The translations under genes and the position numbers were made by a program. A stretch of 64,000 nucleotides of DNA from NCBI GenBank assembly GCA_047495785.1, contig JBLDXI010000006.1:62001-126000 (forward strand), read 5' to 3'. This DNA comes from Lepidodermella squamata (taxonomy: Eukaryota > Animalia > Gastrotricha). Positions 27,058 to 51,000 of the stretch are shown piece after piece. The notes under the pieces were generated by a model. The model had not been told where the DNA came from, made no database searches, and saw only the letters and a program-made list of their open reading frames with translations. Position 1 is the stretch's first letter. Each line of letters starts with the position of its first letter.

Positions 27058-29427
27058 TCAAGAGTTCGGGGCCACAAGGTCCCGATTTCCACGGCCAAAT
27101 TTCGAAAATAACTCATCAATGGTGGGCCATTGTAGAATGAAAATTAATGACTGTGACGTAGCCAGTGTAAAAGCTGACAGAGTTCCGAACAAGCCATTCG
27201 GCGAACTAGCGAACACTGAGTAAGCAAATGTGCACAGCAGGAGGGAAGAAAAGGTGAAGAACAGAGCGATTGCCGTACATCGCGTTTCTTTTTTTAGCGT
27301 CAAATGTTGACGGCTTGGCTTGGCGGCAGTTGCTGGGTTGAACCTATTTGGATGTATCTTACCGGATGAAATTCTTGCCAAGTCAGACCTTGTGCTCCCT
27401 CCTCGTTTTCGAGTCGAGCTTACCGCTAAGCTTAGAGCGATCCCGAGCAGGAGGCCTTGCAATACAAGGAGAACTATCGGCGCTTTGGAAACAGCGTTTT
27501 CGTTAAGAAAAGAGCATGTGTAGATGAGCTCGGTCCACACTGTATCGCTCTCCGCTTCGTAAAATGAGTTCGATGACGTGGAAGCTATTGGCTTCGATTC
27601 TCCGAGGTACCAAGCTAGAACTAAGCAAACATCCACCACCACAACTACAGCTATAGCTCTGATAAGAACATTTCGATGTCTAGCATTTTCGACAAAGCGA
27701 TGTAGCCACAGCTTCGCGCCAATCGCTGATGTTAAAACGCCGAAACCGATTATCGTTAGTGGCCCAACAGCTAAGCAGAAGATGCCAAGCTTTTGTAGAT
27801 TGGAACCTTCAATTGGATGGAACAAAACTGCAGAAGCCATCAGGGTCGAACCTAGGCAGGTGATGAAATCGAACACGTTCGACGTTTTCAGTATGTACCC
27901 CAGTAGTTGTAGCAGCCATTTGGCAGATATGGTAATAACGGTTGCGGAAATCAAGCCGCTGACAGTATGTTCCCGGACGACATTCTCATGGTGAGCGAGC
28001 AAGGGTTCGGTGCGAAGCACTGATCCTTTGTGCCATCGCAATGGCGTTATTTTCTCGAAGTACTTCTCAGGGTCGGAAATGCTGCGATTCCTTGCGATAA
28101 GAACGGCACTACGGGCGCCCTGATACAGCTGTTCAACTGTAATAGGAGGGTTTATCGATTCATCCTCTCCTGGTAGAAATGCTGCTTTTCCAAGCAATCC
28201 AGTTGCTTCTACGTTCACTGTCCTTTGTCGTATGAGTTCGGTTAATTCAAATTTCCTACGCCTGTCCATGATTATTTCTTTCAGACTATCGTTTCGTTTG
28301 TTAAGTTCGAGCTCGGCGTTGTGAAGAATTCTTGCACCAATAACTACGTCATCGAAGCACATCATTCGCCAAGAGAACGTAGGGTCATTCTCGAAATTCG
28401 GAACCTTCAACGACAAGTATTCATCTAGCTGCCTGGCGGTTATACCAATCTGACTTTTGAAGTTCTTAGACTGAGAGGTTGCAAGAAAGTCCGGCCCTAT
28501 GTACAGCGTGTATTCAGCGAATTCCTGGACCATTTTCCGTGTGCAGCCAGGTGGGAGAATTCCGTTGACTACGTCAATCCATGAATTGAAAATCCAAACT
28601 ACGTTGCGTCCCCACAGGCCTTTTCGATAGGCCTCACATGCCATAGCTGGACAAAAGTTGACGTAGCAGTTGCCGTAGATGACTCGAACATCAGCAGACT
28701 TCAGTCTGGCTAGAGATTCCCGCACCCCCGCGTCGTCCATGTAAAATTCCTCCGCAGCGACTTTTTTCCCAGCTCCGAGAATAGCCTTCGCGAAATAGAT
28801 CGCGTCATCATAAGTTGTCTGGACAGCATCAGCCAGGTATCCCATGCGATTCCAACCCAAATAAAGCATCAGCTTAGCTCTAAATTTCTCGACCTCGACA
28901 AAAGATGGTGCGAAACGGTAGAAATTCGGGTACAGCTTTCGATTTGTAAACTGAGGTTCGGTGCATCCAATCACGACATTGATGAATCCGTAGTGTTGGG
29001 GCAACCTAGCGGCTGTTTTACAGGCTGGCGAGCAGATTCCACCGAGATAGAGAGGCGGAACGTAAGCCTCTCCGTTGAATTTTTCTCTTAATGGCAACGT
29101 CAAGTTGCCGTAGACTCGCGAGCTGTTAACGACCGGCTCTAGGTTTTCGTAGAATTTCAGCGCCATTTCTTGAGCTGCAATGGCCAAACACTGGTCATCG
29201 CCCATGTCGATTTGCAGCTTGTAATTTGGTAGAATATCGGGGCTTGAATTTATTGCCTCCAGGACAAGTGTTACAGCCTCAGTGCACATTGGACCCATGC
29301 TATTGACTGGGCCACCAATCGGAGCACTCATTGGGACTTTCAAGGTGAAAGGCTTCTGTGCGCAGGAAATCATTGGAATCGTCGCCAAAATTGCAGTGAC
29401 CCACCACATTTGTTGTAGGGAAATCAC
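27058..29427 (-). CDS. GABA-B-receptor-like class C GPCR, intronless, intact
   Basis: Signal peptide, Venus-flytrap motifs (INSSPDILP.YKL, DDQC, YPNFYR, ADVRVI) directly linked to 7 TMs (AKLW, D..L.AW) with no Cys-rich domain. Confidence 0.9.
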   Translation of the reverse strand: MISLQQMWWVTAILATIPMISCAQKPFTLKVPMSAPIGGPVNSMGPMCTEAVTLVLEAINSSPDILPNYKLQIDMGDDQCLAIAAQEMALKFYENLEPVVNSSRVYGNLTLPLREKFNGEAYVPPLYLGGICSPACKTAARLPQHYGFINVVIGCTEPQFTNRKLYPNFYRFAPSFVEVEKFRAKLMLYLGWNRMGYLADAVQTTYDDAIYFAKAILGAGKKVAAEEFYMDDAGVRESLARLKSADVRVIYGNCYVNFCPAMACEAYRKGLWGRNVVWIFNSWIDVVNGILPPGCTRKMVQEFAEYTLYIGPDFLATSQSKNFKSQIGITARQLDEYLSLKVPNFENDPTFSWRMMCFDDVVIGARILHNAELELNKRNDSLKEIIMDRRRKFELTELIRQRTVNVEATGLLGKAAFLPGEDESINPPITVEQLYQGARSAVLIARNRSISDPEKYFEKITPLRWHKGSVLRTEPLLAHHENVVREHTVSGLISATVITISAKWLLQLLGYILKTSNVFDFITCLGSTLMASAVLFHPIEGSNLQKLGIFCLAVGPLTIIGFGVLTSAIGAKLWLHRFVENARHRNVLIRAIAVVVVVDVCLVLAWYLGESKPIASTSSNSFYEAESDTVWTELIYTCSFLNENAVSKAPIVLLVLQGLLLGIALSLAVSSTRKRGGSTRSDLARISSGKIHPNRFNPATAAKPSRQHLTLKKETRCTAIALFFTFSSLLLCTFAYSVFASSPNGLFGTLSAFTLATSQSLIFILQWPTIDELFSKFGRGNRDLVAPNS

Positions 29428-30151: not shown

Positions 30152-33100
30152 ATGCACATTCTCCTCATTATGCTACCCATCATGGACAATGTCTCAGGAT
30201 TCGGCCCGCCTTTACTATTGGTGCCTTACAATCGACAATATGGCACAACCAATATTGTGAATGGGTCGAAAACGCTAATAATATATGAAAGTCATGCTTC
30301 CTCAGCTGGCGTTATGCCACAAGCAGGTCCATTCGGTTACTTCGACAGCGCCTACACCGTCTCGCTAGGGGGGTCGTTGTCCACTTATTATTTAGAAGTT
30401 CACTCCTTCGAAAAACGCCAGCGAACAATTTCGACGTTCTTCTTCACATACGCCTCATCAGACCGACTGGCGAGAGGGATCGTCGAGTTTCGAGAGATGG
30501 AGTTCATAATTCGCGTCAGGTTTCAAGTTGCCAATTCTAGCGTTAACATAAGCGCACACAAGCCATACGATGGTTTCCACTCGTTGCAACCCATATCGAT
30601 GACTGTTGATAACGCATGGCAGCCGAGAAAATGGCACTTTATAGCTGTTGTCAGCCACAACGAATCACATTTTTCGGTATTTATGGGTGTCGAGCCGGCT
30701 TACGAACTCGTCAAGCTGGCAACTCTTGATGCAAGTGCTTTCAACGATCCTCAAAATAAGCCTATGCCATACTACATTCTGAAAATCGGTTTTATAGTAT
30801 GGGATATTGTAGTAAGCTTTGGTGTCACTTTCGCACATTCGCTGAACGATGACATTTTTTCAGGGAAAATTGGACACTCATAACGGAGCAACAGAAGGAT
30901 TCTCTTGCTTAGTGACCTACAATACGTCACTGACCCATCAGCAATTGACTTCAATCATCGATGGTTGTCGTGGTCTAAATGAAGAACTAATTTCAAAGCA
31001 AATAGGTCTCGTTTTAAAATTTTTTCAAGCTCTCGTATTCAATGATACTCAATGCAGTTGAAATTGTTGGGAAAATGGTGTATCAAGGCCTCGATTGGCC
31101 GCGAGCAGAAAAGCGTCGAGCAATCAAAGATCACGTGAGACAAATTTATTGACAACTTCAAGCCCTGGACCCCTAACCTAAAGATATTTTACTATTTTCA
31201 GTTGAACGAGATCTTGGGGAACATCTCTTACGGCCCACCGGATTCTTTCATAGCGAAACTTGAGAAGGGCATAGGCAATACCATCATTGCAACGTTTACG
31301 AGCATTATCCAACGAGCATATCCTTTTAATGCTAACCGCAGCGAAGAAAGTGTCTTGGAAGAATTAAGTGATTTAATTGCGAATAAAAACATCACGCTTT
31401 CATCGGCAACGCAAGGTGAGCTATAGAAGATGACCTGAAAATGCGGTTATTCGAAGTTTTAACTTGTAGCGGTGCCAATGCCAAGATCTTTCTCGTTGTT
31501 GGGCTTTTGGCCTATTGCATTGTACCATGGCTTTTACGATTTGGGCCCTCGTCGCCTGACGAGCAAGCCTTTGATCGAACAGCCTTCTTTTCCCAAGCAT
31601 GGCATTTTTGATTTCGCGGGCGTGTGGTTCAGCAGCCAAGTTTTCAAAGTTGACGATTTCGAGATCCCAATGCGATCTACCTCGGGTTTTACTGTATCCT
31701 TCTTCTACCTTTATGACCAATCTTTCCCCGGTATGAGGGGGATTGTCGAATTTCATCCGCACTCGGTCGTTTTCGGATATCAGGATCCTGGTGCTTTAGT
31801 TATCGAACTACCAGGCTGTATCATAGTAGCACCAGGTATATTCCCCAGATCGGAGTGGACTTTTGTAGGATTCGTGTTCTCCGCAGAGCCAAACACGCCG
31901 TGGCTAACAATTTTCAACAATTTCACAGCTATATTCGTTGTTGGAAAGCCGCCAAGCAACGATTTGGCGAAAACTTGGTGGTCTAAATCATCAGGATTCA
32001 CTGTTGGCTCATCGAACTGGACAGCAATGCCTCATGCGATAGCCGCGCTTTCAATTTATGACGGCAAGCTAGCGAGAGATGAGCTGTTCGCCGTTCAAGA
32101 TGCAATGCGTTACACCATATCGCGAGAAACATGCGGTATTTCCTCGAAATTATCGGAGACACCAGTGTCGCCTGTACAAAAACCAACATTTGCTGATAGT
32201 GGTCTATTCCCGTTTATTACAATCTCCAAAGGACAGTGTATATTCTCGTTGCTGACTGATAGAATTGTTATAACGAGCTATTCTTGCCGGGAAATGCTTA
32301 CGTCAAATTTTACTGGCAAGATCTCAAATGGACTCGTTATAGCACAGTTCGAAAAACCATACCCCAACATGAACGTTTGCCTACCGACATGCTGCAATGA
32401 AAAGATCTTGTGGAATGGTGACGCTTATATTGTTGGGCTTCGGGGGTCCAACTTTCTGGCATTACGCTACATTTCTGGAATACTAGTATCTCAATCCAAG
32501 TGTCATCGAAAAAATATCAGCGAGTCACAGCAATCAGACGGACCATTTCTATGCTTTCAAACGAAGCACGAACCCCTCTCACCCTGCGATTTACTCCCAG
32601 GTTCGGCTTTGCTGCTGACCATCGATAGCGACAATGCAACCCAGCTTGGAAGGAGATTTGTTCTCGTAATAGGAATCCTGAAAATCAACCTGCATCTATT
32701 TTTGATATTCTGTGTAGGCCGGCCTATACCTCGATGATCTCAGCGAAACTTGCGATTCAGGACCTCCCATCAAATTCAGGAACACTTTCTGGATGAGTGA
32801 ATGGATAAAAACTACTGCTGGCTGCCTCAATGTTCCGGCAAATCAGCCGTGCCCCTACATCTACGAGTGGGAAAACGTAACTGAAACTTTCACCACTGGA
32901 GCTGTTGTTGAAGAGAAAATACCGGTATCTGAAACAACAACACCGAGTTACGATCAACAAAGCTACACAGGTTTCTACTGATTTTTTATCATTGGCGGAT
33001 TTAAGGACAAATCGTCGTCGGCGCGTCAAAATCCCACTCGCGATCCTGAACTTCATTCGCGAAATTCTTGCTTATAATAATTCCGAATCAAATGAAAAAT

Positions 33101-36100
33101 ATTCAGAAATGATTAAAATAAAATAAAGAAATTTTTAAATATATGTTTTTTCATTTAATTGACCTTCACATTATTTTTGCGGGGTTTGCAGCCCGACGGT
33201 TTGGCGGTTTGGCGGTTTTCGGCATAAACCTTAACCTGTCCGCTGTTCGCTGTTGTTAGAAGTTGTTGCTGTTACCTTCTTGAGCATTTTGCTACGACAT
33301 GACAGTCGCTTAAAGGCCAGATAAGCTATCTCGTAGTGAAAATTGCTGTTTCGAGTTAATGATTACTAACATCTTGCCTTGGCCGATGGATGGAAGCAGC
33401 ATTTTGATAGCGCTTGGTTCAGATATCGTTCATCTCGCTTGATCAATACTGAAGTGCTTTTTGTCCAAGTAGCTACGTGTCAGCGATTATACTAAACGCT
33501 TGTTTCTCAGCCTGGGAATGTCTTCAATTGCTGGTATCACTAATATCGGCTTTTGCGCCCAAGCTTGGCCATCAGCATTATCACCATTGTCATTGTTTAA
33601 TTGGTTTTGCTTCAATAAAGGCAAACCAGCTTGCAGAAGTCTGAGCTAGGAAGTGTTAATGGCTGCGGGCATTTTGTTTTTCATCTAGCAAAGCCAGGGT
33701 GATAGACTGCTGCTATTAGAAACTTGAATACTCAATTAACCTGTATGGCATCTATCATGCGTTTCAACTTGATTCTTTCAATGTTCTGTAATACTGCTTC
33801 TCCATTAACCTTCTCAATGACCAGAGTCAACTATCAACTATCAACAGTTAGTGATAGTTGAATGTCATTTGAACTCAATCTAAAACCAGGTTTAACTGAT
33901 CAAAATCTTGTTTTGCTTGGAAGAAGACTTGATCTCACTTAGATCCACAAAGATTGGTGCGCATTGTTGTCTTTCTTGATGAACAATGACTTACTCGCGA
34001 GACTTATTGCCATCAACCGGAATGGAATCTGCATCGTTATGATTGAAGAGTATGGATTTTCAATGGGGTCCTGTTGCCTTGTCCCTAAACCCTGCTCCTT
34101 GCGTTGATTAAATCATTTTTATTAATATTGAAAATCAAATATTTAGATGAACGCGTTTAAACCACTGTGTTTAATTGTTTTATTCTTCGGCGCCGTCTCG
34201 GCGGCCGTGTTTTGTATTGATAAAACAGGTTATTTCATTCCGTTACTTCTCCACAAATGTTAATCTATATCGGTTTTTAGAGGAGAACCTGGCCGCCTGT
34301 GCTGTGGGCGAGGGCCCTTGTGGGCCTTGGTGCCTAACTGCTTCTGCAACCACTGCACCTAGTGCAACTACTGCTGCAACCACTGTACGTAGTGAAACTA
34401 CTTCTGCAACGCATGAATTCACGGGATTCGCCGGATTCAGTATGTTTACTTTCTTAACGGTCGAATTCGAATTTATTTGGAATGTATCAATTATAGAGAT
34501 CCGACATGATTTGGTCGATTTGGTCGAGCTCCTCCTGACCGCCGTCTCCCTGTTAATTTTTGGATTCGCAATTGTCATCGGCGCCATCACCGGCGTAAAA
34601 GCCTGGTGGGACGGGCGGCGAGCGGCGGGCCAGCTTGTTGCCGCCGCAACTTCGGGAGCACTGCAGGCAGTCGAGGCGGTCCAACCACTCATCGAACGAA
34701 TCTCTATTCCTGTCGAGGCGATCGCTGCCATGCAGCCCCAGCTGGAACGTGTCCTGTCTACACAGCCTAAGTTGAACAAAGAGCTCTCCAGTCTGCTTCG
34801 AAGCCAGGTCAACCACGGCGGCAGTACGCCCCACCTCCGTGGCAGAACGGAAGTTCTTTCGGTCCCGCTGCTTGACCAATCTCGCTCTTCTAGAAGCGGC
34901 TGGAAAATAGTAAGCTTTATTGCCTAGTTTTTATCGCATGTTTGCATGTGCATGTCATTTTCAAGTCGAACACTTCGCAAACTGTTCGCTGAAGAAATAC
35001 GAAAATTGAAAATACGAATTACGAAGATGAGAGATCCAAAGATGAGAGTGAAAGATCCAAAGAAGATTGATTCGATTGATCCAAAGACGTTTGATTCGAA
35101 GAAGATTGATTTGAAGAATGAAAGATTTTCAAGACGATGAAATGATGCACCAAACTAATGCTGTTTTCTCTTTATAGGTTTCTTGACTACTTATTCAGAA
35201 AGTAAGTATTTGAAATTTAATTGATGCAGCCAGGCATGGTTGAAGCTTTGTCGATGCAGCCAGGGAAGTTTTTAACATCAGCGCTTGTGTACTAATGCTG
35301 GTTTTTTTATTTTAATCACGTGCAGTTGTAGAAATTAATTCTCGTTTTAGATGATATTATTTTACTTATTTTTTCTATAACGCTGAGGCGAATAATCTGG
35401 ATTTACTCATCGGATTCGGCGCATTGATTGCGGTTGCTTTGTGTTGCTTGGAGGGTGTAAATTTCTGGATCAGGCTGAGAAATTAGTATTCGGATTTATT
35501 TGGAGTGTATCAATTATATACATCCGAAACAAGCCCCAATATCGGTGCAACACAGTGGTTCGTTGTCTATTAATCTGACAGCGAGGCGATGTAACGTATT
35601 GCCGTTTTTTTAGAAACAAATTTCTGATTGTCTTGCACGAGAGCCAGTGGTACCCGCGAGAAAGGGCGATGAAACGCGCTGCTCAACCGATCTATTATGC
35701 CGGGCTTCACTCCGGATTTCACTGTTTCAACTGATCTCATTCATGGTAATCTGCCGTGATTACAATTTTCTGATTACAATTGTAACATTTTTCGTTCGCC
35801 TAGATCATCAAAGCCACGTTGGGCAACTGCTTGGTTACGGGACAACTGGAATTTTATGACCTATCGAACTTCTTCTCATTGATTTTAAGCTGTTATTTAC
35901 AATGAAAACAACGGAAGTGATCAAATAAAGTTAATTTATTGATTCAAATTCGTCCTTATCTTCCTCGCTTGAATCATCGTCGCTTAAATCATTCACAATA
36001 TCAAAAATGACAGCTCGTTCGTCAAATCTATTGAGATCATTTCCAAGCACATCACGCCGAATCGGGTTTACAAAGCGACAAAATTGCAGAGGGTGACCAA

Positions 36101-39100
36101 GTTGTTGAAACAATGTAAATTTGTCAACAGCTTCAGTTTTGACAAAACACTTGAGATTTTCGAGAGATATTTGAGCATTCAGGCGGCCGCGTTCATGGTA
36201 CTCATCACTAGTCATCACTTGCCCGCATCCTGAATGAAAACTGCTGAAACAAGCTGGGTCTGATATTACAAATTGAGCTTTCGAAGGATTCGAGTTGGCA
36301 TTTTCAACCCGAGAATTTTCTTTTATTGCAAGCTTTCGAACAGGCACGCTCATCGTAGCATATTTTCCAACGGAATAAATAATTTTCAGTAGCAAGTTGT
36401 TAGCCACATCCAGAACAAGTAGAGAGATCGCTCCAAGTAACTTCACTACGTACTTGAAAAGAAAGCTCAAAATCAACAGCAGGAATAGTAAAGCTGTAAG
36501 GTACAAACTTTTGTGGCCACCGCTGGTGTATACGATAAGAAATCCGGCAATGCGCAAATATACACCCATCAAGCATGAAAATCTAGTGTTTTCAATCGGC
36601 TTCGAAAGATAGAATAATGTAAAACCCACGAATGCCGATAAGATCAGTGAAATGAACACAAAATTGACACAAATTTGTCGAATGTAAGCAGCTAATCGGT
36701 GCAAAGCTAGAGTTGAGCTTAAAATAGTTGCTATGAACGCTGATGGCTTATTATTTCTGTAGCTCGAAGAAAAAAATCTAACAGAGCAAAAAACGAAAGC
36801 GATTATCGACGCTAGTACGGCCAAGATGGAACCAGTTGAATAAAACAAGAAGGGCCTCTCCGCCAGGTAAGGTGAGAAAAATACTAGTGCTGAACCGATC
36901 AAAATGAAAGCTATAAAAGAGCGAGAGAAGGGCATGAATGTGTAGGAGATTTTGTATTTCGAATCAAAGAAGCAGACGGCAAATTGAACTCGGCGGTATG
37001 GGTCAACAGCAAACTTCGAGTTTCCCAACAAACGGTCGAACATTATTGATTTCGAATAGTCCAGGACTGTATCCATAACGTTCGAAATTGAGCGCGTGGC
37101 ATTTAAACAACTGACAGTAATAAATTCGTCAGTATCTTCTGCCACCGAGATCACGACTGGTTGGGGAGATACATGCGAAGAATCTAGGCGAATAAACTGA
37201 ACCTAAATGAGGAAGTTATTTCAAATTTAGACTCGAATAAAATCTTCAATAGATAACTAACTTGACCATGCTGCCAGAAATCCAACAGTTCGTCCTGTTT
37301 GACAGGATTGAAAACGAAAACGTCAATGCTGTTAATCCCTGGCTCGATGACGGCTGACAACGAATCGGAAGAGCCAATTTCATAGCGATTGATTGAAACA
37401 AGCCCTAGAACTGGTTCGCCAAGGCACGAGAGAAACAACAACAGCGACATGACTAGGAGCTGAGAACTGTGACTATAGGCTGACATCCAGGGTCTCCAAA
37501 TTGCGTACGGGTCGATAAATCGAATAAAAATTGCGTAAATTCGAGCGAATTCGTATTGCTTTCGATCGATAGAAGGCGCAAATGAACGACGCCAAAACTA
37601 TCACTCCGATAGCCAGTAGAATTGACACAACGACCCAGTAGTTGGGAGTTGGGAGTGATAACGGTAGTGACGAGTCAGATTTGACCGATGAAGTAGGGTG
37701 GATTTGCGCCTTTGGATTGCCCTTGTTGAACAGAAACCAGTTTTCAAACGAAAAATCCGGGGATGAATTCATTTGAAGCGATAAAATTAATTAAAAAGCC
37801 ATGGTAATGCATTCAAATCTAGATTCTAGAAAATTGATAAAAAATTGAGAAATTAGCCCATTGAAGAGAAATAAATTTAATCAAGTCACACGACAATGAC
37901 AAATATAATTTTGATAAATAATAAATAATTTTTTTTGAGGTCTGCAAAACAATAATAAACAAATGGCCACAATAAATTTCTTTGAGCTCTGTCCAAGAAT
38001 TATAAATTATTATCACTTCCGTTCTGTGAAGCTATCCTGATATTCGTGGAAAGCTGATTTTTATCGAACAAGCGTCGAAGTTCAGATCAGCGCCATCGGA
38101 TGCTTTGTGAGAGTTCATCATCATCATTCGTCGTCGCCGAAGTGGTCATCGTCATCGTCATCATCGGCGTCTTCAACATCATTAACATTCGCCCCCAGCA
38201 TTAGATATTTCTGTCGAACGTCGGCTTTTCTCTTTTCAATCTCAGGCTTCTTCATTTTTGAAGGAATCTCGCCAATTTTGTCGAGATAGGGCAAAGGTAT
38301 AGCACCTACAAATCAAATTTAAATACATTTCGGAGACAGAAATATAAATGACCAAGCGCTGAATGAAATTCGATGAAAATAGGCAGACTCAGAATTAATT
38401 AGCCGAAAGATTTTAATCAAATAACCGATTTCTTGCTGTTCCAAATTTCGCAAAGTTCGCTTAATACCATGTTCCTATTGCTAGGATTTGTGCTCAAGAT
38501 CAAATTCGACCTTAACTACTAATTTGGGAGAAATTTCAACTCACCTTCTTTCACCCATTTGAACATGTCCTGCATTTTCTTGGAAGTGAGACGGAGTTCA
38601 CTAGCCACTTTAGGCGGATAGGCCATGGTTTTCTTATAGGTGAACTTCTTATTGGAATCCGTGGCGTCAAACGCTTCGTAAGGCGTTTTGTAGTCCCAAT
38701 CTTGCTTACCTTCGAGCAAGTTGTAATTATCGGTATACCTATAGCAGGAGAAGCGATTAAAAAGTCCACGTTGGCCTTTCGCGACAGGTAGATCGAATCT
38801 TTCTGTATAACTGGGCCCGTGTTTCGCGTTATGAAATTGACCGTGCTTCATTTCGCGAATGATGAAAGGCGGATCGCCGGCAATCGATGCACCCAAAATG
38901 GCGTCTAAAAAAATACAATTTGAAAAATAATCGAAAAAATCCCGACGAATTTAGCAAACAACTATCTAAAAATTTTCATTGATCACGAATCTTTAAATCA
39001 AGGCGAGCGAGCGATCTAAGAACTAAGAGTCGACAATTCTATTCGATACAACGATGGATTCTACCTCCAGAAAGGATCTTTTTAGTTAAGTGAACACCTG

Positions 39101-42100
39101 AAGTAATCCGGGACAAATACAAGTAGTTATGCCCGTGAAGACGAGCAAGAATCAGCGGTGATCTATGTCCAGGCAAGATTGTTGCTAGCTATGGCTGCTG
39201 TTCTGTTGGCTACGGCATGATTGAACACCAGGTGAAAGAGTACGTAGGACGAGCAAGAATCAGCGGTGATCTATGTCCAGGCAAGATTGTTGCTAGCTAT
39301 GGCTGCTGTTCTGTTGGCTACGGCATGATTGGACACCAGGTGAAAGAGTACGTAGGACGAGCAAGAATCAGCGGTGATCTATGTCCAGGCAAGATTGTTG
39401 CTAGCTATGGCTGCTGTTCTGTTGGCTACGGCATGATTGGACACCAGGTGAAAGAGTACGAAGTCCCTGTCACCGACGACGGCCTGTGCATCCTCGAGTA
39501 TGAATTGCAGCTGCAGACACGGCGATTACGCCACGGCTGTTATGTACGGACTAGTCATAACTTCCAGACTCGCCTTTTGGCATGAAGAACAATGAAGCAC
39601 GAACGTGAAAGAAACGAATCAGATTCGCGGCAAAATTGCATTCTCAGTCGATTCAATCCGTGTTTTAATCGAAATTCTTATCTTTACCATCCTTATCCGG
39701 CTTCGATTTAGCCAACGAGGGTAAGAGAGGTAACCATTTCAGAAGAAGGAAGCGAATAGCCCAGCTGTTAAATTCGCCGGTCTCAACTCGGAAACGTGAA
39801 GTCAAAGCAATTTCGCTAGAATATCCCGAAAAATTAAGGCGGATTACGTGACAAACGGCCGCAAAAATTCTCGAATATTCGCCGATTTTCGAAAGTTGAA
39901 TAACTGATCGAATTTCATCGATAATTCCGATTTAAATTCCGAGTGCAGTTTTCCGATTTCCGAAAAGACGCTTTCATCAGATTAGAACAAGTTCAACATT
40001 TCAGACCGGAAATTAGAATGAACAATCGGTTCGGTTTCTGCCAAACGGTAGTCAGTGAAACGCATTCTTCTCTTTATTGCGAGGAAGTTGAGCAGGGGGT
40101 TCGGCGGCAGGGTTAATTTGCAAGCGACGCGCCTCCGGTGTTAATTAAGATGATGATAACAGCCTGGATAAACCTTTTACGCCCTAGGTCATCAGGTTCG
40201 AACAACTCACTCGGCGTCAGGAATGAATTGAGTTAAGGATTAATTCCGCTGTCAAGCTACTATTCAAGCTACTATGAACTTCTATGATCAACGATTCAAT
40301 TTCGAATAATTTCGATAATCCTTAATTATTGGCTTGAATTCAACAATAACTTCAAGTTCAGAATTACTTCTCCAGTCGGTTGGGAATGCCAAGGTGCGAA
40401 TTCGTCGCGCATTCCGTTCAACGGCGCTATGAATTGTGTCGCAGGGTTGCTGAGAATGTCCGACCTAAAGGCAGGTACAATAAAAGCAGGTTTTAATAGA
40501 ATAAGCACGATTCACTCATCTCTCCCGCACTTGAAATAGCCAGGTGCCACGTACAGGTGCTAACTATGTACTAATATTGGTGGCAAGTTGCGGATCATTT
40601 CCGGATCAGAACTCGGTTAATTTCCCAGCAAAAATATTGAATTAATCATCGGCCTCCTTTTTAAAGCAGGTCCAAACTTAAAAGTTCCCACAGAAAGCCC
40701 AGGACAACCTACCTAAATAAGTCAAAACCAAGTTGCACTATAATTGAAGGGGACCTTGATATTTTCTACTAAACATAACGTCACAAGAAAGTGCTTGCTT
40801 GCTTACCACAAAAAAGCGATGTTCAACTGTTCGCAAGGCTCTTCCAGATGCTTTGGCCTCTTGAATGGCCAAATACAGAAAATTCGGAAAATAAGAGTTC
40901 TTGTTTTGACCTAAAAAAATTCAGAAAGTGCAAAATCTCAACGAAAAATTAAGCTAGCTCCAACCTCCAGCGCTATCTGACCACAAGTAGACATGTTCGA
41001 CATCAGGACTCAAGGTCTCCGTTAAATACCTAAAAGGAAAGCAGAATAATTTTGCGCTCAAGCCATTAACACCTACTTTAGAATGCAAGTTCCAACTTCA
41101 GATACGCCTTTTTTCCTAGAAAAATATAAGCGCTTGATGAAATCTCGCTTAATTGTAATTCCAATTACCCTTCATACTCCTCGAATAAATAGTGAACGGC
41201 TTCGCGGGTTACCACATTTAAAACGGTAATATCCCGAGTCTGGAGCTTCGAGTGATACCTAAAAAACACAATGATTCAAGCATTTTGAGAATCGAACTAT
41301 TGAAACTTGCTTAAATTGACAGCAGGGAGTTTCGAGATTTTTCATGAAATCAAAATTGATGACAGCTATTTTGCCGCCACTATTCTTCGCTCTTTCCACA
41401 TCCTGAGCTAAAATCCTCCTAGCGCGATGCTTTCGCTTCATGTGCTTCTCCAGCAGCTTTTTCAGCCGTTCCTGGTTCGGCTTCGAGTCTGTTTTCGATA
41501 GGGATTCAAGGCGCGCGCAAAATTTGCATTTATCAACCTGTGCCAACAGAATGAGTTAAATAATTTACCCCATTTATAAATAATCAATTAAAGAAACCTT
41601 TGGTCTTTGGAAAGCGAGTTTCGGAAAACATCGTTTGAAGATCTGTTTGAAGGTCGTAAGTGAAACGGGCTGATGCACATGCGACTTGCTAGATGTCGGC
41701 GCAGTGCTAGCGAACTCTCTTTGCAGCTTTTCTTCCTGCTCAACGTATTCGCGATGAAGAGAAGCTAAAGAATGAAAGGAATCGATGTAGTCCTTGTCCG
41801 AAGAAGCTCTTTTGTAGTGCGATGGAAGCTTCTCAATGCTCATAATGAATGAAGTAGCGGAATCAAGACGTTCTTTAGAGATCTTCCCAACGCCTTTTTT
41901 CTTCCCGCGGCCATCCGGAGCAATAACAGCTCGAAACTTTGTTTGCTTATTCATCAAGGTGTAATTAATGACATCGAAGGAGATTTGCAGCGCATTTGTA
42001 AAAAAGTAACGGCAAACCTATAACCGAAAGCTTTAAATATAAAATGTAGGAATGATCACTATACCGACCGGCTCGTCATAGGGCCTGTTATGCATTGTCT

Positions 42101-45100
42101 TGTCCAAGGCAGCTTCTGATGGCAGTCGGTACCGGTAATAGCAACGCTGTTTACCGTTCTTCACTGTCATTTGCGAAGGAATTGACACAAAGCGAGCGAT
42201 GAATTGCCTGCGATCTTTGATGTCACCTGAACGCCAGAATTCCTTGCACAGCTTTTTGATTGCTTCGTCTGTGAACTTGGTGTAGCATTTTTCCGGACAC
42301 TTGCAAATAACACGCTTCCCAATCTTAGCCCGAACCATCTTGGCAGGCCGAATAATTGTGCCATCTCGCGATTTCTGAGCTCGCTTGAGGAACTGCTTTC
42401 CACTGTTTCTCAGCTTGAACTCGCGGTCTCTATTACGGGACTAGAAATGCAATAATGACAAGAGATACAAATTGCTGGAAATTCAAGCTTACCTTTCTCA
42501 CTCGTGGATCGACATGAGAGGGAAGCTTCGGTTTAGCCAATTCGCGTAAATGTCGTGGCAAAGACGGTGCCATATCGACGCCTGCATTTAATAAATTTCC
42601 TACAAAATACAACAACACAAATTTATATTTATTGAACATTCGGCATTGAGATGTCGGTTATTGAGAAATACTTTCCATTAAGTTCCATGAGAATAATAAC
42701 AAGAGAGCGATAAATCTGTTCTTGAGCTAAAACAGGTTGGCATCCATGATGATTGAAAGGATCTATCGTTATCAGAGATCAGTTGATCAGAAAGCCAATG
42801 ATAAAAAAATTTATTATAAGAAACGAAAGGCAAGATTTTAAAGTGACTAAAACGCAAGCAAGACGACAGCCAAATTATTTTCAAAACAGGCAAGAGAAAC
42901 GTGATTGGCGGTGAAGGTAGCTGCTAGCTGCGAGACTGGATTAAGCGCGCCTCTGTCTCGTCGATCTGATGGGAAAGTTGGCGAGGTCTTTGGCCAACTG
43001 ATCGGTCTGAGCATACTTCCGAGGATTATTCTCCTTATCGGTAAGAGCATAGACCATCAGATCGTTCTCCTGATTTACCTCGACCGGTGTAGGAGCAGTA
43101 GCGACCTTGCCTGACAAGAAAGCTGGCCATTTCAGCCATATTGGGCGGCGAAATAAAGCAGCCATGGCTTCCTCACGCTTGCAAGCCCAATATGCATACG
43201 CTAGAAGTACATAACGCACAATCAGCACAATTAGATGAGCGTCAAGGCCAGCATCGCTGATCGCCTCAGAGGATTGCGTAATGTACCATTCTATCGCTGC
43301 CATGGGGAAGAAGCTAGACGTGAGCAGGCAACGTTTGAAGGTAGCGGAAAAGAAAAACAGCGACCAATAAAACAACGTTTGGGTCTCAAAAAAATCCTCA
43401 GTGAAGACTGGAAACACTTGCGATAACGCGGATTTAACAGCCGCCGTTTCAAAAGAGCTCTCGAGGGCTTTTTGGGCCGATTGGTAAGACTGAAGTACGG
43501 ACTTTTTGAAGAGCAAGTCGACAAAAAAGTGTTGAGTGTACTCGCTTACAATCTAAATGAGAATTATAAAGCAAATAAGTACAATTTATCCGTCAGAATT
43601 TAATACACACTAACCGGGGTCCAGGGCGATTTCGTGTAGTTGAGGTAGCAGCAGACGGCGCTTGCATCGCTATAAGCTTCAAGGAGAGAGCTCAAAGCTT
43701 CATGATTTCCGCTAACCTTTGGCAGCAGCTTAGCTATAGTTGGTTTTAGTGGCAGTTTGTCATCGGCCTTGGCTTGGTAACAATTATACAGCATCGAGGC
43801 TAAATGGGTCCGGCTGTCTTCAGGCAAAGGCCATTTGCAGCCATCAGAGGCAGTGAAGGTCAGCCAAGCCTCGACACAAGCCTTGCCGGTGCCTTTGTAT
43901 TTTTTAAGGCGATCCATCGACCGAGAACCAGGCTCTTTGTCGCGAAAAGTGCAGCCCTTGAGTTTATCATCGACCTCCTCCGACTTGACACCATCAAACA
44001 CAGAGACGGATGACGGTTTCATTGATGGTAACTCGGCTATTTCATCATTATCATTATCCCCCGAGGGCTCAAGTCTTCCCGCTCCCGGCTCCGCCTTCTC
44101 AAACTTAGCGAGAACAGCATTGACAGTGGATAACACATCCTTGTTGTCTTTGTCATGCTTAAGAACAGCTGCCAGGGTTTCCAGCACATTGAGCGCGCTC
44201 TGAGTGTTTGTAGCAGCTGTGGTTGTCTTAGTCCTAGCTACAGAAGTTGACGATCTGGACGGGGATGGAGTGACGCTGGCTCCGACGACGATGGAAGACG
44301 GAATAGTCGTATCTGTTTTTACCAATGGTTCGGTAAACCAATTGGCGCGCTTGAACAGTTGCTTTGCATTTGGATGAAGAGCAAAGCAGCACAAATACTC
44401 GGACTCTCCGTACAACCAAGTGAATGTCGGAAATGAAACTTCGTCGACTTTCGCTGCGCAAGACTTTAGGGTATCCGCCTTAGGGCTGCAGGTCCCCTTG
44501 CTGTAGCAGTCGAACAAAGACAGTGCCCTGACAACGCGGAGCGAAGTTTCACCTGAGCAACCACAGATGCCGGCGGTGCTTTCCATTAACTTCAACTGTT
44601 CAGTAAGGCAGGACCTGAGGTTAGCGTCCTTCAGCTGAGCAACCTTTTCGTAGAAGCGATGGCCATGCGAATACAGCAACTGCCAATCGGTCGCAATGGA
44701 AGTGGCAGGTGCTGCAGTTGACGCCAACTTGGTCGGTTTGGTTGCTGATGCCGTGGCGGACTTGCTGCTGGTTGCTTGCGTAGAAGTCGACGGGGATAAC
44801 GTACTAACTGTCGTGTCAGCTGTAGCCGACCCATCGTCTTCGTTATCAGCTTCATCACGTCCATCATCGCCGTCAGGTTGACCGTTTTCCTGTTCTTGCG
44901 GCTTTTGATCTCGCTTTAGGCGGATATGACTGCGGAGCAAGATCGACTCAGGGACGGACTCTGAGGCGTCCTGTGCAATCAACCCAAAGATGAGCAGCAC
45001 GGCAAGCGGAATAACTTGCATATCAATAAATTTAGCCGATAAATCTATAAAAGTGGAAAATAACGACACAAGTATCAATTGTTTTATGCCTGCAAGATAT

Positions 45101-47137
45101 AATGTTGCTGGCCAGGCTTCTTAAGACTTGTAAAGTGAGGGAGCGAGATAGCAAGCATCTGCCGACTGCTTAGCTAGTAAATGATTGAGGGATACTTCTG
45201 ATCCATCTACTGTAATGAAAGCATCCAGCAGTTGGCCATGATGTCAATGCGCTACTACGATAGTTTCCCATCGTCGGGGCAATGTTTGCTTGGCATCCCA
45301 ACTTTCTAATAATAATAATAATTTCGTTTTCAAAGCGAACTTCAAGGACCAGAAGGGCATGCCACTTGCTCTAACGCTAGGTCTTAACGTAAGTGAGAGA
45401 TATGAACATCGTAAGACTGAGTTTGACTGGTGCAGTCTAGCTGACACTCCCAGGTTCCCAATTTACTATTTTGTAACGCCATTGATTGGTAACACCACCG
45501 ATGGAGACTCGATCCTGGTTCCATCACTAGGACTTGAACCCAGTCCCGAGCGATATCCCCTCAGATACACAGTTGCTCATCGACCCAACTAAGCCACCGT
45601 GCCTCTTATTCTACCTACTCATCTCTGGCACGAGTATTGAACTCCCAACTTGTAGGTATGGAATTGATTGTTATGGGAATTGGTTTCATTGTCATCGATT
45701 TCTGGCTAATTCAGCTGCAATTGCCAAGTGCCAAATGCTGCTATAAAACCAGACTGCAATAACGATAACTGTAAAAATTTGCATGTTTGCATATTCTCGC
45801 CTCATCTGGGACGCCATCTTGGATTTTGCCTCTTTTTTGTTCCCTGTGAAGGTTAAAAGCCAGGAAAATGATATTTTCATTTTATTTTTATTTTATCAAA
45901 CATTTAAATATAAATTCACTCATTATTAATTATTTCTGTTTAAATTTGTTTTCGCGTGGTTTTCAGGCAGAAATTTGCGAGTGGGATTTTGACGCGCCGA
46001 CGACGAAATTATCTTTCATTTCCCGGTTAGCTGTACTGATTGCGATTATCCTGGGTGTTACAGCCGTAATGACTATACTGGTCATAGTAGGCGTGATCTT
46101 GTACAGAAGGAGGTCTAAATCTTTGGTAAAGCGATTCATCGGCATGTCATTTGAGTCTGAAGCTGCTGATGCTGCGAACTACATCGAAGCTATAGCAGAC
46201 CTATCTAGTCTTCTGAAGGACTTGCCGCAGGCTGAAGAACTCATAGAACAGTTCAAGCCTATCAACATTCAGCCCGAAAGGATCCAACTGAATGAGTTTG
46301 TTGGCGAAGGTCAGTTCGGCTCCGTTCATCGAGCCAGTCTTAAAGACTTTGATAGCAACAGCGAAATCAAGATCGCAATCAAGAGTGTCAAACCAGGTTC
46401 CGCATCAAAATTGACTGATTTTCTAAGAGAAGCCCTCATCATGAAAGATTTCTCTCACCATAATGTTCTGCCCCTTATTGGAGTAGCTGCCGTTAACGGC
46501 ACGCCATGCATCGTTGCTACGTTCATGGCTAAAGGCAGTCTAGATCAATTTCTGAAGAAAACAGACGATGACCGGACTGAAGCGGTGCTTATCGACTACT
46601 GCCTTCAGATTTGCCGTGGCATGGTCTATCTTTCATCGAAAAATTGCCTCCACCGAGACCTCGCTTGCAGGAACGTCCTGGTCTCGGATGATTTCGTGTT
46701 GAAAATCAGCGATTTCGGAATGTCGCGCATCCTCGACACCGATAATGTTTACTACAAGCTGCAAAACAGTGGTGGTGAATTGCTGATACCGATTCGCTGG
46801 TACCCTCCTGAATCCATCGAGCAAATGAAATTCGGCCCGAAAAGCGATGTTTGGTGTTTCGGCGTGACGATGTGGGAAGTATTTTCAGGTAAAACCTAAT
46901 GATCTCTCAATACACCTCCAATATTCATTTTGCGTACTAGAGTGCAAATCGATCCCGTATGAAGGACTGGACACGTCATCAGTGGTAGTTCGAATCACGA
47001 CTGGTAAGGTGCTGGAAAAACCCTTGAAATGTCCCGAGCCAGTCTACGAGAAAGTGATGACAAAATGTTGGCTGGAAACGGCGAGTGACCGCCCATCGTT
47101 TGAAGAGCTGGAAGGAATGATTGTAGAGAATGACTGA
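30152..47137 (+). CDS. Receptor tyrosine kinase: SP, LamG-like, SEA-like, LamG-like, pseudo-trypsin, stalk, TM, kinase
   Basis: Approximate exons 30152-30811, 30864-31005, 31058-31134, 31202-31415, 31470-32665, 32718-32970, 46031-46888, 46941-47137 splice in frame. Kinase has GEGQFG, IAIK, HRDLACRN, DFG and PIRWYPPE. Removing the transposon leaves a normal 63-bp phase-1 intron. Confidence 0.82.
34147..34927 (+). CDS. Cargo: type I membrane protein with small Cys domain and Thr-rich stalk
   Basis: ATG at 34147 gives the signal peptide MNAFKPLCLIVLFFGAVSA. Phase-1 introns 34229-34280 and 34440-34496 splice in frame. One TM (LLLTAVSLLIFGFAIVIGAITGV). 3' end uncertain. Confidence 0.65.
35931..37486 (-). 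CDS. Cargo: NEMP/TMEM194-like nuclear envelope integral membrane protein
   Basis: Signal peptide and an in-frame intron at 37261-37203. LVFFSPYLAERPFLFYSTGSILAVLAS matches the NEMP TM1-2 motif. MTSDEYHERGRLNAQISLENLK...HPLQFCRFV matches the conserved C-terminal NEMP region, followed by an acidic tail. Confidence 0.85.
37473..37772 (-). CDS. Cargo: 99-aa single-pass membrane protein
   Basis: Clear TM (WVVVSILLAIGVIVLASFICAFY) followed by a basic stop-transfer segment. Overlaps the first NEMP ATG by 14 nt. Confidence 0.55.
   Translation of the reverse strand: MNSSPDFSFENWFLFNKGNPKAQIHPTSSVKSDSSLPLSLPTPNYWVVVSILLAIGVIVLASFICAFYRSKAIRIRSNLRNFYSIYRPVRNLETLDVSL
38124..42573 (-). CDS. Sola1-type DDD transposase, 11 exons
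   Basis: CKC..KC...F, VCRYFF..ALQIS, DGRG, SHYKR, F.RPK.DKC..C, FDFMKNL.TP (D1), WSDSAGGQNKN (D2), GHSQQPCDTIHSAVER (D3), PF.I.EM, and an acidic tail. All junctions are in frame if intron 4 uses a GC donor (~41310). Confidence 0.88.
39140..39460 (+). repeat. ~3 x 108-bp tandem repeat encoding a DM9 (DUF3421)-like fragment, inside a transposase intron
   Basis: Near-identical units start at 39140, 39248 and 39356. They translate as YVGRARISGDLCPGKIVASYGCCSVGYGMIEHQVKEY(EV), matching DM9 YVGR..PGK..YEV. Confidence 0.85.
42941..45021 (-). CDS. Cargo: GEX1/KAR5/Brambleberry-like membrane protein with two Cys-rich domains (~672 aa, 2 exons)
   Basis: Signal peptide from MQVIP and an RLKR site. CRD1 is SC...C...R...ALSLFDC...TC......SC..KVD.....F.....E...CC. 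CRD2 is AC...C...R..LA..LYNC...AY..A.AVCCY. An in-frame intron (43614-43553) joins an exon with ~3 TMs. Confidence 0.7.
45305..45642 (-). mobile_element. tRNA-derived SINE-like element nested in the Sola1 element
   Basis: On the minus strand: A box TGGCTTAGTTGG (45596-45585), B box GGTTCAAGTCC (45540-45530), an (ATT)n tail near 45307-45322, and flanking 9-bp direct repeats tcccaactt. Confidence 0.6.
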
Positions 47138-47960: not shown

Positions 47961-48076
47961 CAGGGTGTTCGCGTAATAATACTCTGGATGAGCTAAAAAT
48001 AGCTACAAAAAAGCTCAAAGGAATGCAAAAAGTAGCAAAGCTATTTTTAGAAGAGTATTATTACGCGAACACCCTG
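47961..48076. mobile_element. Tc1/mariner-type MITE
   Basis: TIR cagggtgttcgcgtaataatactct with a TA TSD. Excision restores ATIYNLLILWL in M3. Confidence 0.9.
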
Positions 48077-51000
48077 TAGATGGTCGCCGCTATGCAGGAC
48101 CACGTCAAACTCTGAGCAAGCTTGCCCAGGAGAGTATCGTAGGGCTTTTTCGGAACTTCATTTAGAATCGCACTTTGCATTACGGTCATCGTTAGAAGGA
48201 CCGTAACTGAGAAAGCAGCTCGATCTGGCGCATCAGGTGGCATCAGAAAAAGAAACAAATTCAGAGAGGCGAGCGTCGATGAAGGGACTGCAAAGTTTTT
48301 GATGTGATACCCTGGATTTCTCGCAAGTTTAACCGCGAACTTGAACGTGGACACGTAAAAGCCCTTGCAGAAAACTTGACCTGAAGAATTTTCAGTCGAG
48401 ACCAGCGTCCAACTGTCGCCTACACGGGAATGGTTAAAATCGAACAGAAGTTTTTCTTGATCTACTCGAACAATATTGCGGCCTTGTTCGAGGGAGAATT
48501 CGAAATCGCACGTTTGCATGTCCAATGGGAACAACTGAAGTGACAGCTCGCAGCTAGCCTCAAACAAACCCTCCTTTTGCCAATAAAAGTCAAATAGGTT
48601 CTATTGGTTGTTGGCACTTTGGAGGACATCATCATCAAATAGTCGTCATTGATAATCATGTTCCGCATTTGAAGGTTAGCATTAGCCGCCGATAGAAATC
48701 GAATCTTTGGCCGCCACACATTGGGCAAATTGTCGATGTAGACAGTCTCGAAATTTCGGCCAGTTGGAAGGGCGGCCAAAGACCACCACGGGCACGTATT
48801 CACCCGCCAGTGCAGCACCATCAACGCTTTCACAGTTATAATTTCGCTAACTGTGTCGATTTCATTTAGGCCGTTAATTTGAAAGCCAACTTCGATTTTC
48901 AGCGGGGCGTCAGAAGAATTCACAATATTTCTAGGTGCATGTACTGAGGCGTTGAAATTGGCGCAGTTTCGCTGTATCGAAGTCACGTCGATGTAGTCAA
49001 AAGTTGGACCCTCAAAGAACGGCACCATTCGCTCAGCAATTGAGGTCCCGCTGACATAAGTAGTTTGCTGCGAGAAAAGTCGACCGCAAGCGTTGCTGAG
49101 ATTGAAGACTTCATCATGGCTCAATGCGGCGTTGAAGAAATAGACGCAAGCAAATTGCGTTTCTGTTTCAGGTTTGCCAAAGAGTAAATTTAAAGATTTC
49201 TCCCCGGCGTATCCGATGCCTATTTCCATCGAAATATAATCCATTGACACGTTTGCGACTACCGGCGGGAAATGTTCGTCGTTGAAGACCAAGCAATCAG
49301 CAGAGATACCTAGGCAACATAAATTGAGCAACCCTCAATAAGGTTGAACCAGTGAAAAATTGAAGAAATCAACCACTATCTAGATAGAGACTAATAAAAT
49401 AACGTCGCCTATCGGACTCTAAATCTAGGCCTGAAATAGACTTGATGAGTATGCTGTCCCCAGCGTTAATTATTTCTATTCATTTACCTGCTGACCATGG
49501 CTCGTAATAAATCATATGAGAGTACGTTAAGCAGTTGTTATAAGCGTCATCGCTTGAGGTGATGGCGTAGAAAGTCCAAGATCCGGGTTGGTGATATCTC
49601 ACGGTTGATATGACTTCTTGCGAAAACACAGTCATCGAGTTTGCATTCGATATTAGACGGATGTCAATATCCGCTTCAGAGCCTGAAGCGGTGCAAGAAA
49701 CTGAGAGGAAACCGAATATTGTAACAATTCCATTCCCCATCCCATTGTCATTGCATAGCGATTTGATGTAGAACGACAGGGTGAAACCCGAACGCGGCCT
49801 CGGTAGGTTGTCGTAGGCAACCAACCCGTCGAATAAACCTGCGTGCCAGTCAGTATAATTCCACGAAACGCTCCCTTGCCCATAGGGCCCTTCAAATTTT
49901 ATCTCATTCACGTTATAAGAACTTGGCTGGCGGGGTAAGATGGCGTTTCCAGCTCCGTCCCACCCGATTAGCTTCGAATCATACGACAGCGGCCAAAATC
50001 CAATTAGATTCTCCAGCCGAGGAATGCTTGTCATATCTACTCGCGGCTCTATCTCGCCCATTGTTGCTTTAGCAGCGTTGAGACACGGTTTTAGAAACAA
50101 CGATTTCACCTCTTCTGCAGCCAAAGCGACTTTGTACAAAGCGACACATGAAACTTTGAACTCAGAGGTGAGACGAACTGGTCTATGCAGCCATTGTTTT
50201 CGTTTTCCGATCACGAATTCTCGCCGAGTATCTTTAACGTAAAGTTTAGCCGGAACCGTGTAATTTTCACTGAATAGCCTCTGATCATTTGTTCTCATTC
50301 GATAGAAAACAGCCTCGTTCGACGACTTTCGATACGTGAAAGCCAACAAATTGCTATCCCCTGAATTGTTGTCTGGTTCATCGGAATCTTCTCCGGCAAG
50401 GTACCAACTATCAGCCCCAGTTCGCAATGAAATTCCAGCTCTAAACATCTCGAATATGCCATCGAATTCGATCGAGCCAATTTTGTAACTAGCATGTACA
50501 GAAACTGTGAAAGAACTCGGAATTTCGGGTACCGAATAACTGGCGATTCTCGTTCCGCTCGTCGAATCGTAATAACCAGTGTTGCGATGAAATGTGGCTG
50601 TGCTGTTTGTCGGCTGTGTGTCTCTTCGTTTGAAGTTGTGTATCCAGTGAGACCCGAGTAAGCGTCCATAGGCCAGAATGCGATGAGTTGGTCCAAGCGT
50701 GGCAGTTCGATCTTGGAAACATCCAAGCCGATGGTACAAGTAGACAAACTACTCAGAACCAGAATATGACCGCAAAGCATGTCTTTAGTCTTTAGTGCAT
50801 TTTCTCAGCAGGATGACAATTGTACAAAAGCAACTGAAGGTGAAAAATTACGGTCACCACGCGTGGGGTTTAATATCCTCGAGCAAACCCTCTAGGTGTT
50901 TTTCCGAAGGGATGGGTAGGTAACAAATCGGCATTTATTTGTACAGTGTAAGATTACAATGAATTGGAATTGTTTGCTCGCAAAATCGATGCAGTTCCTG

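Follow-up and report, generated by a model that had tools for sequence, protein, structure and literature searches.

Do the coding regions on the two sides of a 13-kb element in the genome of the gastrotrich Lepidodermella squamata belong to two separate loci, or to a single receptor? The question was raised by the gene at positions 30152-47137 (+ strand) of a stretch of 64,000 nucleotides (GenBank assembly GCA_047495785.1, contig JBLDXI010000006.1, positions 62,001 to 126,000, forward strand; hereafter the window), for which the original prediction, made from the sequence alone, had proposed a receptor tyrosine kinase (RTK) gene interrupted by a transposon. RTKs are defined by what their ectodomains recognise, and these ectodomains have been shuffled freely in invertebrate and protist lineages. 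Our analysis upheld the proposal: the two apparent loci are one receptor-kinase gene interrupted by a transposon, and seven paralogs show the same order of parts, uninterrupted by the 13-kb element. The encoded protein starts with a predicted signal peptide, after which come two Laminin_G_3/ConA-like domains separated by an insert of ~100 amino acids (aa), a pseudoprotease of the chymotrypsin fold, a Cys motif, a Thr-rich stalk of the O-glycan type, a putative transmembrane helix and a tyrosine kinase. The best explanation, which we consider fairly probable when taken as a whole, i.e., with the mechanism and the intronic transposon described below included, is that the gene belongs, with an intact coding sequence, to a lineage-specific RTK family. 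What is newly established here is the intronic placement of the transposon, a phase-consistent gene model containing a micro-exon, and the confirmation of the trypsin fold.

Paralog loci and the ancestral gene

The genome, a compact one of 121 Mb in 151 contigs (the window is part of contig C6), was searched with the first open reading frame (ORF), the 421-aa ORF and the kinase ORF of the locus. All three pieces were found in the same order and on the same strand, within ~5 kb, in at least seven paralog loci, located on contigs C60, C30, C28, C1 and C12 and, in two cases, a short way upstream on C6; more distant copies of the family were observed on C31, C29, C46 and C9. Each of the seven paralog loci has the exon pieces, labelled A, A2, B, C, D, E and F, in a compact, collinear arrangement, and none contains the transposon. 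Since these loci hold all the pieces in one compact order, the ancestral unit was one gene.

The kinase exon of the window is 76-84% identical to the paralog kinase exons. In comparisons with the paralogs, the kinase exon has a ratio of nonsynonymous to synonymous substitutions (dN/dS) of ~0.10-0.14, and the ectodomain exons one of 0.18-0.27; these values are rough, dS being largely saturated. Between two of the paralogs, L011 (C60:33800-40800) and L012 (C30:137000-144500), dS is 0.32 across the ectodomain exons, whereas their kinase exons, with 99% aa identity, have a dS of only 0.03; this contrast suggests gene conversion or a partial homogenisation of the kinase half.

Gene model

The gene model was checked exon by exon, with splice sites read in the sequence, and the exons were handled singly in the searches and not as a joined sequence. 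It consists of eight exons (labelled 1, 2, 2b, 3, 4, 5, 6 and 7, where 6 is the transmembrane-kinase exon and 7 the last one), with 1,198 codons plus the stop, separated by introns of 52, 52, 67, 54, 52, 13,060 and 52 nt. The splice sites are canonical throughout, all the phases are mutually consistent, and each of the eight exons is open in its own frame, free of stops and frameshifts. The features are the following:

30152-30811, + strand: exon 1, with the start codon, a hydrophobic, signal-peptide-like N-terminus and most of Laminin_G_3-like domain 1; within ORF 30152-30883
30864-31005, + strand: exon 2, C-terminal part of Laminin_G_3-like domain 1 (GFSC...CRG motif), with tblastn matches in the paralogs
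31058-31134, + strand: exon 2b, micro-exon of 77 nt with which the ~100-aa insert between the lectin-fold domains begins
31202-31415, + strand: exon 3, remainder of the insert domain (the part originally called SEA-like), conserved in 7 paralogs
31470-32665, + strand: exon 4, Laminin_G_3-like domain 2 (~31470-32180) and most of the trypsin-fold pseudoprotease (~32180-32665)
32718-32970, + strand: exon 5, end of the pseudoprotease (its last strands and its C-terminal helix), Cys motif (C...QPCP) and Thr/Ser-rich stalk
32971-46030, + strand: intron 6 of 7, 13,060 nt (63 nt before the insertion), including the TGA at 32979-32981
33013-46005, no strand assigned: transposon with terminal inverted repeats (TIR), 12,993 bp, in intron 6, carrying a NEMP-family ORF, a DM9-repeat ORF and other ORFs
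46031-46888, + strand: exon 6, putative transmembrane helix (~46031-46105), juxtamembrane segment with a conserved Tyr (NYIEAI), and tyrosine kinase through subdomain IX
46941-47137, + strand: exon 7, end of the kinase domain and stop codon, with almost no C-terminal tail

Homologs of exon 1 are collinear in 7 or more paralog loci, and the donor GTAAGC at 30812, used with the acceptor at 30863, restores the exact spacing of the paralog L013, which is intronless here. The donor of exon 2 (ATAG/GT) is of phase 1 and conserved, and the micro-exon is needed because this phase-1 donor must meet the phase-0 acceptor of exon 3. The gene structure initially drawn had the junction 32970/46031 right and missed this 77-nt exon (31058-31134), whose peptide is conserved, in collinear position, in L011, L012 (twice), L017 and L013, and which is flanked by introns of 52 and 67 nt. 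In L012:4414-4927 (- strand), i.e., in the C30 paralog, there are two tandem copies each of exon 2 and micro-exon 2b, ~225 nt apart.

Exons 4 and 5 are continuous in the paralogs L014 and L016. The donor of exon 5, at 32970/32971, is of phase 1, and the last intron (52 nt) runs from the donor TCAG/GTAAAA, at 46888/46889, to the acceptor at 46940. The signal peptide is predicted from the hydrophobic N-terminus of exon 1, and the single transmembrane helix from a stretch of 25 hydrophobic residues, followed by RRRSK, which opens exon 6; both are conserved in the paralogs.

The transposon and the 13-kb intron

The element lying in intron 6 is bounded by perfect terminal inverted repeats of 30 nt (33012-33041 and 45977-46006) and by a target duplication of 4 bp, AAAT (33009-33012 and 46006-46009). 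A second copy with identical termini was found at C11:1012364-1028566, where the target duplication is ATGT. Because of the inverted repeats, the target duplication and this second copy with a different duplication, the element was recognised as a mobile TIR transposon; no transposase domain was found in those of its ORFs scanned with Pfam. The perfect repeats and the intact target duplication suggest that the insertion is recent. As cargo, the transposon carries an ORF of the nuclear envelope membrane protein (NEMP) family (35931-37154, - strand; Pfam E = 3.2e-16), and also inside it is an ORF with two DM9 repeats (39217-39585, + strand; PF11901, E = 3.7e-17), with an internal, near-perfect duplication of 28 aa.

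The place of the insertion could be read from the paralogs. The window shares with L011, L012, L015 and L016 the phase-1 donor ACAG/GT preceding the transmembrane exon, down to the codon at which it stands, and, since the closest paralogs have it, both the transposon and the TGA at 32979 are intronic. The intron before the transmembrane exon is 54 nt long in L011 and L012, where it is open by chance, and 48 nt in L016, with the acceptor just before the transmembrane-coding sequence; L013 and L014 likewise break the frame before this exon, in a different donor context. Splicing of 32970 to 46031 would produce ...YT/AVLIAIILG, which is parallel to ...YT/VTLVAIILG in L011. We also considered whether the exons on either side of the transposon could be one exon, with the TGA at 32979 as a nonsense mutation, and the conserved donor together with the short introns in the paralog DNA ruled this out. 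The gene can encode the full receptor only if the 13,060-nt intron is spliced, and splicing across it is predicted.

The alternative that survives best is that the transposon has split the gene, leaving a secreted ectodomain that stops at the TGA at 32979-32981 and a transmembrane-kinase part that is either silent or driven from the right end of the element (ATG at 45868). We hold this to be unlikely, although it deserves serious consideration: the intron has grown from 63 to 13,060 nt, compared to 52-67 nt for the other introns of the gene, and secreted forms of the ectodomain module exist elsewhere, in the metagenome relatives described below; yet the donor, the acceptor and the 21-nt 3' remnant of the intron are intact and all the exons are open. 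The insertion, moreover, looks recent from its perfect inverted repeats, so that a split would predict nothing yet visible in the sequence. There is also an ORF (45868-46899) that begins within the element, crosses the 3' remnant of the intron and enters the transmembrane-kinase exon in frame, but the same open frame is found in the C11 copy, which makes it an accident of the element and no adaptation.

This frame starts with the ATG of position 45868, in the right end of the transposon, and continues (45868-46030, + strand) through the intron remnant into the transmembrane-kinase exon; at the end of the C11 copy it is 93% identical over 46 aa, and thus it belongs to the element.

That the window copy has become a dead pseudogene, as its upstream neighbour has, within a birth-and-death cluster seems improbable. 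The family is indeed large and turning over, and the neighbour L017 (C6:58.5-64.5 kb) shows stop codons in its kinase exon and likewise has an insertion in the intron before the transmembrane exon, but in the window gene no stop or frameshift occurs in the eight exons, the splice sites are canonical and dN/dS is 0.1-0.25. This inverted neighbour (C6:58500-64500) extends into the start of the window (1-2500, - strand), with a stop in its kinase exon, and its intron before the transmembrane exon contains a repetitive insertion of ~0.6 kb; the same intron has thus been hit twice in the cluster.

The lectin-fold domains and the insert

The ectodomain exons, as single sequences, gave no Pfam or PDB sequence match, and their domain calls rest on profiles, relatives and a fold model. 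The AlphaFold model was made on a natural uninterrupted ORF of the paralog L014 (C1), which covers exons 4 and 5, is ~38% identical to the window and has the same motifs, with an alignment of 26 rows; the mean predicted local distance difference test score (pLDDT) was 83 and the predicted template modelling score (pTM) 0.85. In a structural search, residues ~19-240 of this model matched ConA-like jelly rolls with Z of 16-18. The profile of domain 1 (exons 1 and 2) was compared by hhalign with that of domain 2, and the two aligned with 96.4% probability (E = 1.2e-09) over 207 columns; because of this alignment, the gene is concluded to contain two homologous Laminin_G_3-like domains. Direct Pfam matches to Laminin_G_3 on members of the family were marginal (E = 0.025). 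The two LamG-like (Laminin_G_3/ConA-like) domains originally proposed were borne out by the L014 model, by the Pfam calls on the relatives and by the hhalign comparison of domains 1 and 2. The top Foldseek matches of the L014 model, the binding domains of clostridial neurotoxins (template modelling score ~0.3, root-mean-square deviation 12-16 Å), were discarded, as they reflect only the shared ConA-like jelly roll and are no evidence of a toxin.

The insert between the two lectin-fold domains (exons 2b and 3, ~100 aa) is specific to the receptor family and is absent from the secreted relative P0002. Searches of Pfam and of PDB profiles gave no match for it, and no GSVVV motif is present; the insert-domain ORF of a paralog had no usable match in the ESM Atlas. 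Exon 3 modelled alone, i.e., without the micro-exon 2b, gave a beta-hairpin and a helix with a pLDDT of 70 and a best fold match of Z 2.9, and no SEA entry was present among the fold matches of this model lacking the micro-exon. The label SEA-like is a guess.

The pseudoprotease domain

Residues ~258-456 of the L014 model matched the chymotrypsin fold with Z of 16-19.3 and a root-mean-square deviation of 2.5-3.0 Å over 172-206 residues, in an all-against-all structural search. Among the S1 proteases the matches included plasminogen (Z 19.3), MASP-2 (Z 19.1), enteropeptidase, thrombin and hepsin and, among the dead ones, protein Z (Z 18.6), haptoglobin (Z 17.3) and the HGF beta chain (7mo7_D, Z 16.7; 1si5_H, Z 16.1). 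The family profile of exon 4 gave weak matches against the PDB (E 0.009-1.3), 31 of the 34 being S1 proteases aligned in register, azurocidin included. The trypsin fold is confirmed for the family by the model of the paralog L014, and the high pTM suggests that, in the model, the lectin-fold domain and the pseudoprotease pack as a rigid pair.

The state of the protease was assessed by aligning the family with P0077, an active trypsin domain. All the motif strings on which the dead protease had been proposed were found, in the ORFs 31472-32737 and 32718-32978, and the loss of His57 and Ser195 from a trypsin fold was confirmed by the alignment and by the fold model of the paralog, with Asp102 lost as well. 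At the positions of the triad the window has Ser (57), Gly (102) and Pro (195), and Gly193 and Asp194 are also replaced; the alignment revealed neither an activation cleavage site nor the R/IVGG motif in the window pseudoprotease. Because the triad and the cleavage site are lost, the domain is a pseudoprotease and not an enzyme. The domain retains the three canonical disulfides (42-58, 168-182 and 191-220), and its N-terminal barrel has a deletion of ~30 residues between positions 57 and 102. As read from its sequence, the S1 domain of the window is dead and partly eroded.

The kinase domain

The Pfam family PK_Tyr_Ser-Thr (PF07714) matched 45868-46899 with E = 1.5e-66 and 46982-47137 with E = 2.8e-07 (profile positions 216-255). 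As originally stated, the kinase motifs are intact and can all be read in the translation: the Gly-loop GxGxxG, the Lys in IAIK, HRDLACRN, DFG, PIRW and the activation-loop YY. The juxtamembrane Tyr is conserved, and the protein ends ~10 residues past the kinase domain.

The top PDB match was to EGFR (E = 1.5e-61), and it was discarded as an artefact of a tandem-kinase construct (2 × 105 bits). The best scores per domain were those of EphA2 (167 bits) and MET (164 bits), which we treated as equal, and there is consequently no basis for calling the kinase MET-like, since MET and Eph kinases score equally per domain. As regards membership of the MET/RON class, the protein has no Sema-PSI-IPT ectodomain, ends ~10 residues after the kinase and shows no specific similarity to these kinases.

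Relatives outside the genome

The profile of the exon-4 homologs (13 loci) was searched against 1.84 billion representative proteins. Only a handful of the 168 matches span both the lectin and the trypsin halves; many others align to the Laminin_G_3 half only, and the scanned ones carry Laminin_G_3 domains. The proteins P0001-P0008, which are ORFs of ENA metagenome contigs, matched with E from 1.8e-44 to 4.6e-19. In the five relatives scanned, Pfam identified Laminin_G_3 (PF13385) and Trypsin in P0001-P0003, and CUB and Trypsin in P0006 and P0007, the matches to PF00089 having E of 2.3e-14 to 6.6e-24. Since their proteins end after the conserved Cys motif, the relatives are considered secreted. 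It is shown that the ectodomain module of lectin-fold and dead-trypsin domains shares its ancestry with a rare secreted protein family, and that in the Lepidodermella genome this module is joined to a transmembrane-kinase exon.

No kinase motif was observed in any of the 163 external proteins fetched, and no protein within 50% identity of the receptor family was present in a collection of 15 billion proteins. A word-based protein search with exon 4 also gave no match, a result that its length window and low sensitivity make uninformative. An RTK with a dead trypsin fold packed against a lectin-fold domain was found neither in the literature searched nor among the relatives from the 1.84-billion-protein library. 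The original statement that no described RTK class has a pseudoprotease in its ectodomain was thus in agreement with the full-text literature searches and with the 163 external proteins, which included no kinase-fused relative.

On the metagenome contig L027 a CUB-transmembrane-tyrosine-kinase gene (2303-4090, + strand) lies ~0.8 kb downstream of a secreted CUB-lectin-fold-dead-trypsin gene. We examined whether the two could be fused, and they are not: the pseudoprotease gene ends at the Cys motif and its neighbour is a separate gene. Neighbours of this type could have been the raw material for the kinase fusion in the genome of the window.

Proposed mechanism and competing readings

In the mechanism that we propose, the rigid pair of lectin-fold domain and pseudoprotease would be the ligand-binding unit, with a glycan or a protein as the ligand, and the dead protease would offer a protein-binding surface, as in the HGF beta chain, haptoglobin and protein Z. 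Dimerisation driven by the ligand would then activate the kinase by trans-phosphorylation.

Several points weigh against the intact receptor that we favour. The N-terminal barrel of the pseudoprotease is short by ~30 residues, and the fold was modelled on a paralog only ~38% identical to the window copy, whose single sequences have no direct Pfam match to Trypsin or Laminin_G_3. The dN/dS values are rough, as dS is saturated for most pairs. The predicted splicing would have to span the 13,060 nt of intron 6, if compared to 52-67 nt for the other introns of the gene, and the transposon ORFs on the opposite strand could interfere. Finally, the ligand and the function are pure inference.

Two further readings concern the origin and the role of the dead protease. 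It appears quite improbable that the family arose by the capture of a secreted, ligand-like dead protease onto a tyrosine kinase, which would place in one chain the partnership that in vertebrates is divided between HGF/MSP and MET/RON, and that in the window copy the transposon is now separating again the soluble ectodomain from a transmembrane kinase devoid of ectodomain, possibly constitutively active and driven from the end of the element. Very improbable, lastly, is the role suggested in the original prediction by analogy with HGF/MSP and MET/RON, i.e., a tethered ligand or a decoy for protease inhibitors, because the HGF beta chain and the other dead proteases, although present among the structural matches (Z 16.1-18.6), match no better than active ones (plasminogen, Z 19.3; MASP-2, Z 19.1), Sema/PSI/IPT domains and a MET-specific kinase similarity are absent, and the replacement of Gly193/Asp194/Ser195, the missing activation site and the deletion of ~30 residues make capture of a canonical inhibitor or of a serpin unlikely. 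Of that first interpretation, one interrupted RTK gene with two LamG-like domains, a dead trypsin fold and an intact kinase has stood, whereas the functional analogy is speculation, and the eroded cleft argues against canonical inhibitor binding.

Neighbouring genes

Besides the receptor, the window contains a single-exon ORF of 789 aa (27058-29427, - strand), with an ANF_receptor domain (E = 9.3e-26) followed by hydrophobic segments; on L027 an ANF_receptor ORF of 815 aa, resembling it, adjoins the pseudoprotease gene. At 48061-49331 (- strand) exons of a Cys-loop channel (Neur_chan_LBD, Neur_chan_memb) were found after a lectin-fold-like sequence, and the external protein P0028 (1,099 aa) is composed of Laminin_G_3 and Neur_chan_LBD; a lectin-channel fusion is therefore not unique to the genome of the window. 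No part of the window resembled human sequence.

Comparison with known systems

Provided that it is expressed, the receptor would show a pseudoprotease recruited in nature as a sensing module, and would be a clean example of domain capture from a family of secreted proteins. The locus is also a natural experiment, in which a 13-kb transposon has entered a 63-nt intron: either splicing tolerates the insertion or the receptor is split into a soluble and a kinase half.

The closest systems are the secreted proteins with Laminin_G_3 and dead-trypsin domains (P0001-P0008 and P0090), in which, as in the window, a ConA-like domain directly precedes a trypsin fold devoid of His57 or Ser195. P0002, P0003, P0005, P0008 and P0090 end in the same C-terminal Cys motif, and P0002 further resembles the window protein in its signal peptide and its first lectin-fold domain. 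By contrast, these relatives have no transmembrane helix, no kinase and no ~100-aa insert, their segment from position 57 to 102 is retained, and GDEG occupies the site of Ser195; their identity to the window is only ~22%. The protein P0066 (1,253 aa, with Destabilase domains) resembles the receptor in having Laminin_G_3 domains directly upstream of an S1 domain, but it has no kinase and, with R/IVGG, AAHC and GDSGGP present, its protease looks catalytically competent.

The HGF/MSP beta chain, haptoglobin, protein Z and azurocidin share with the window domain the chymotrypsin fold, the loss of catalytic residues and, as protein-binding modules, the use to which we propose that it is put. These vertebrate S1 pseudoproteases differ in being soluble ligands or carriers rather than receptor components, and in having a complete N-terminal barrel, and we claim no common ancestry with them beyond the S1 family. 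Compared to the named RTK classes, to which no orthology is claimed, the window protein has an ectodomain without Sema, Ig, FN3, EGF, Cys-rich or other typical domains, and almost no C-terminal tail; on the other hand, it has in common with RTKs in general, MET and Eph among them, a signal peptide and a single transmembrane helix, as predicted above, and a kinase with HRDLAxRN, DFG and the activation-loop YY.

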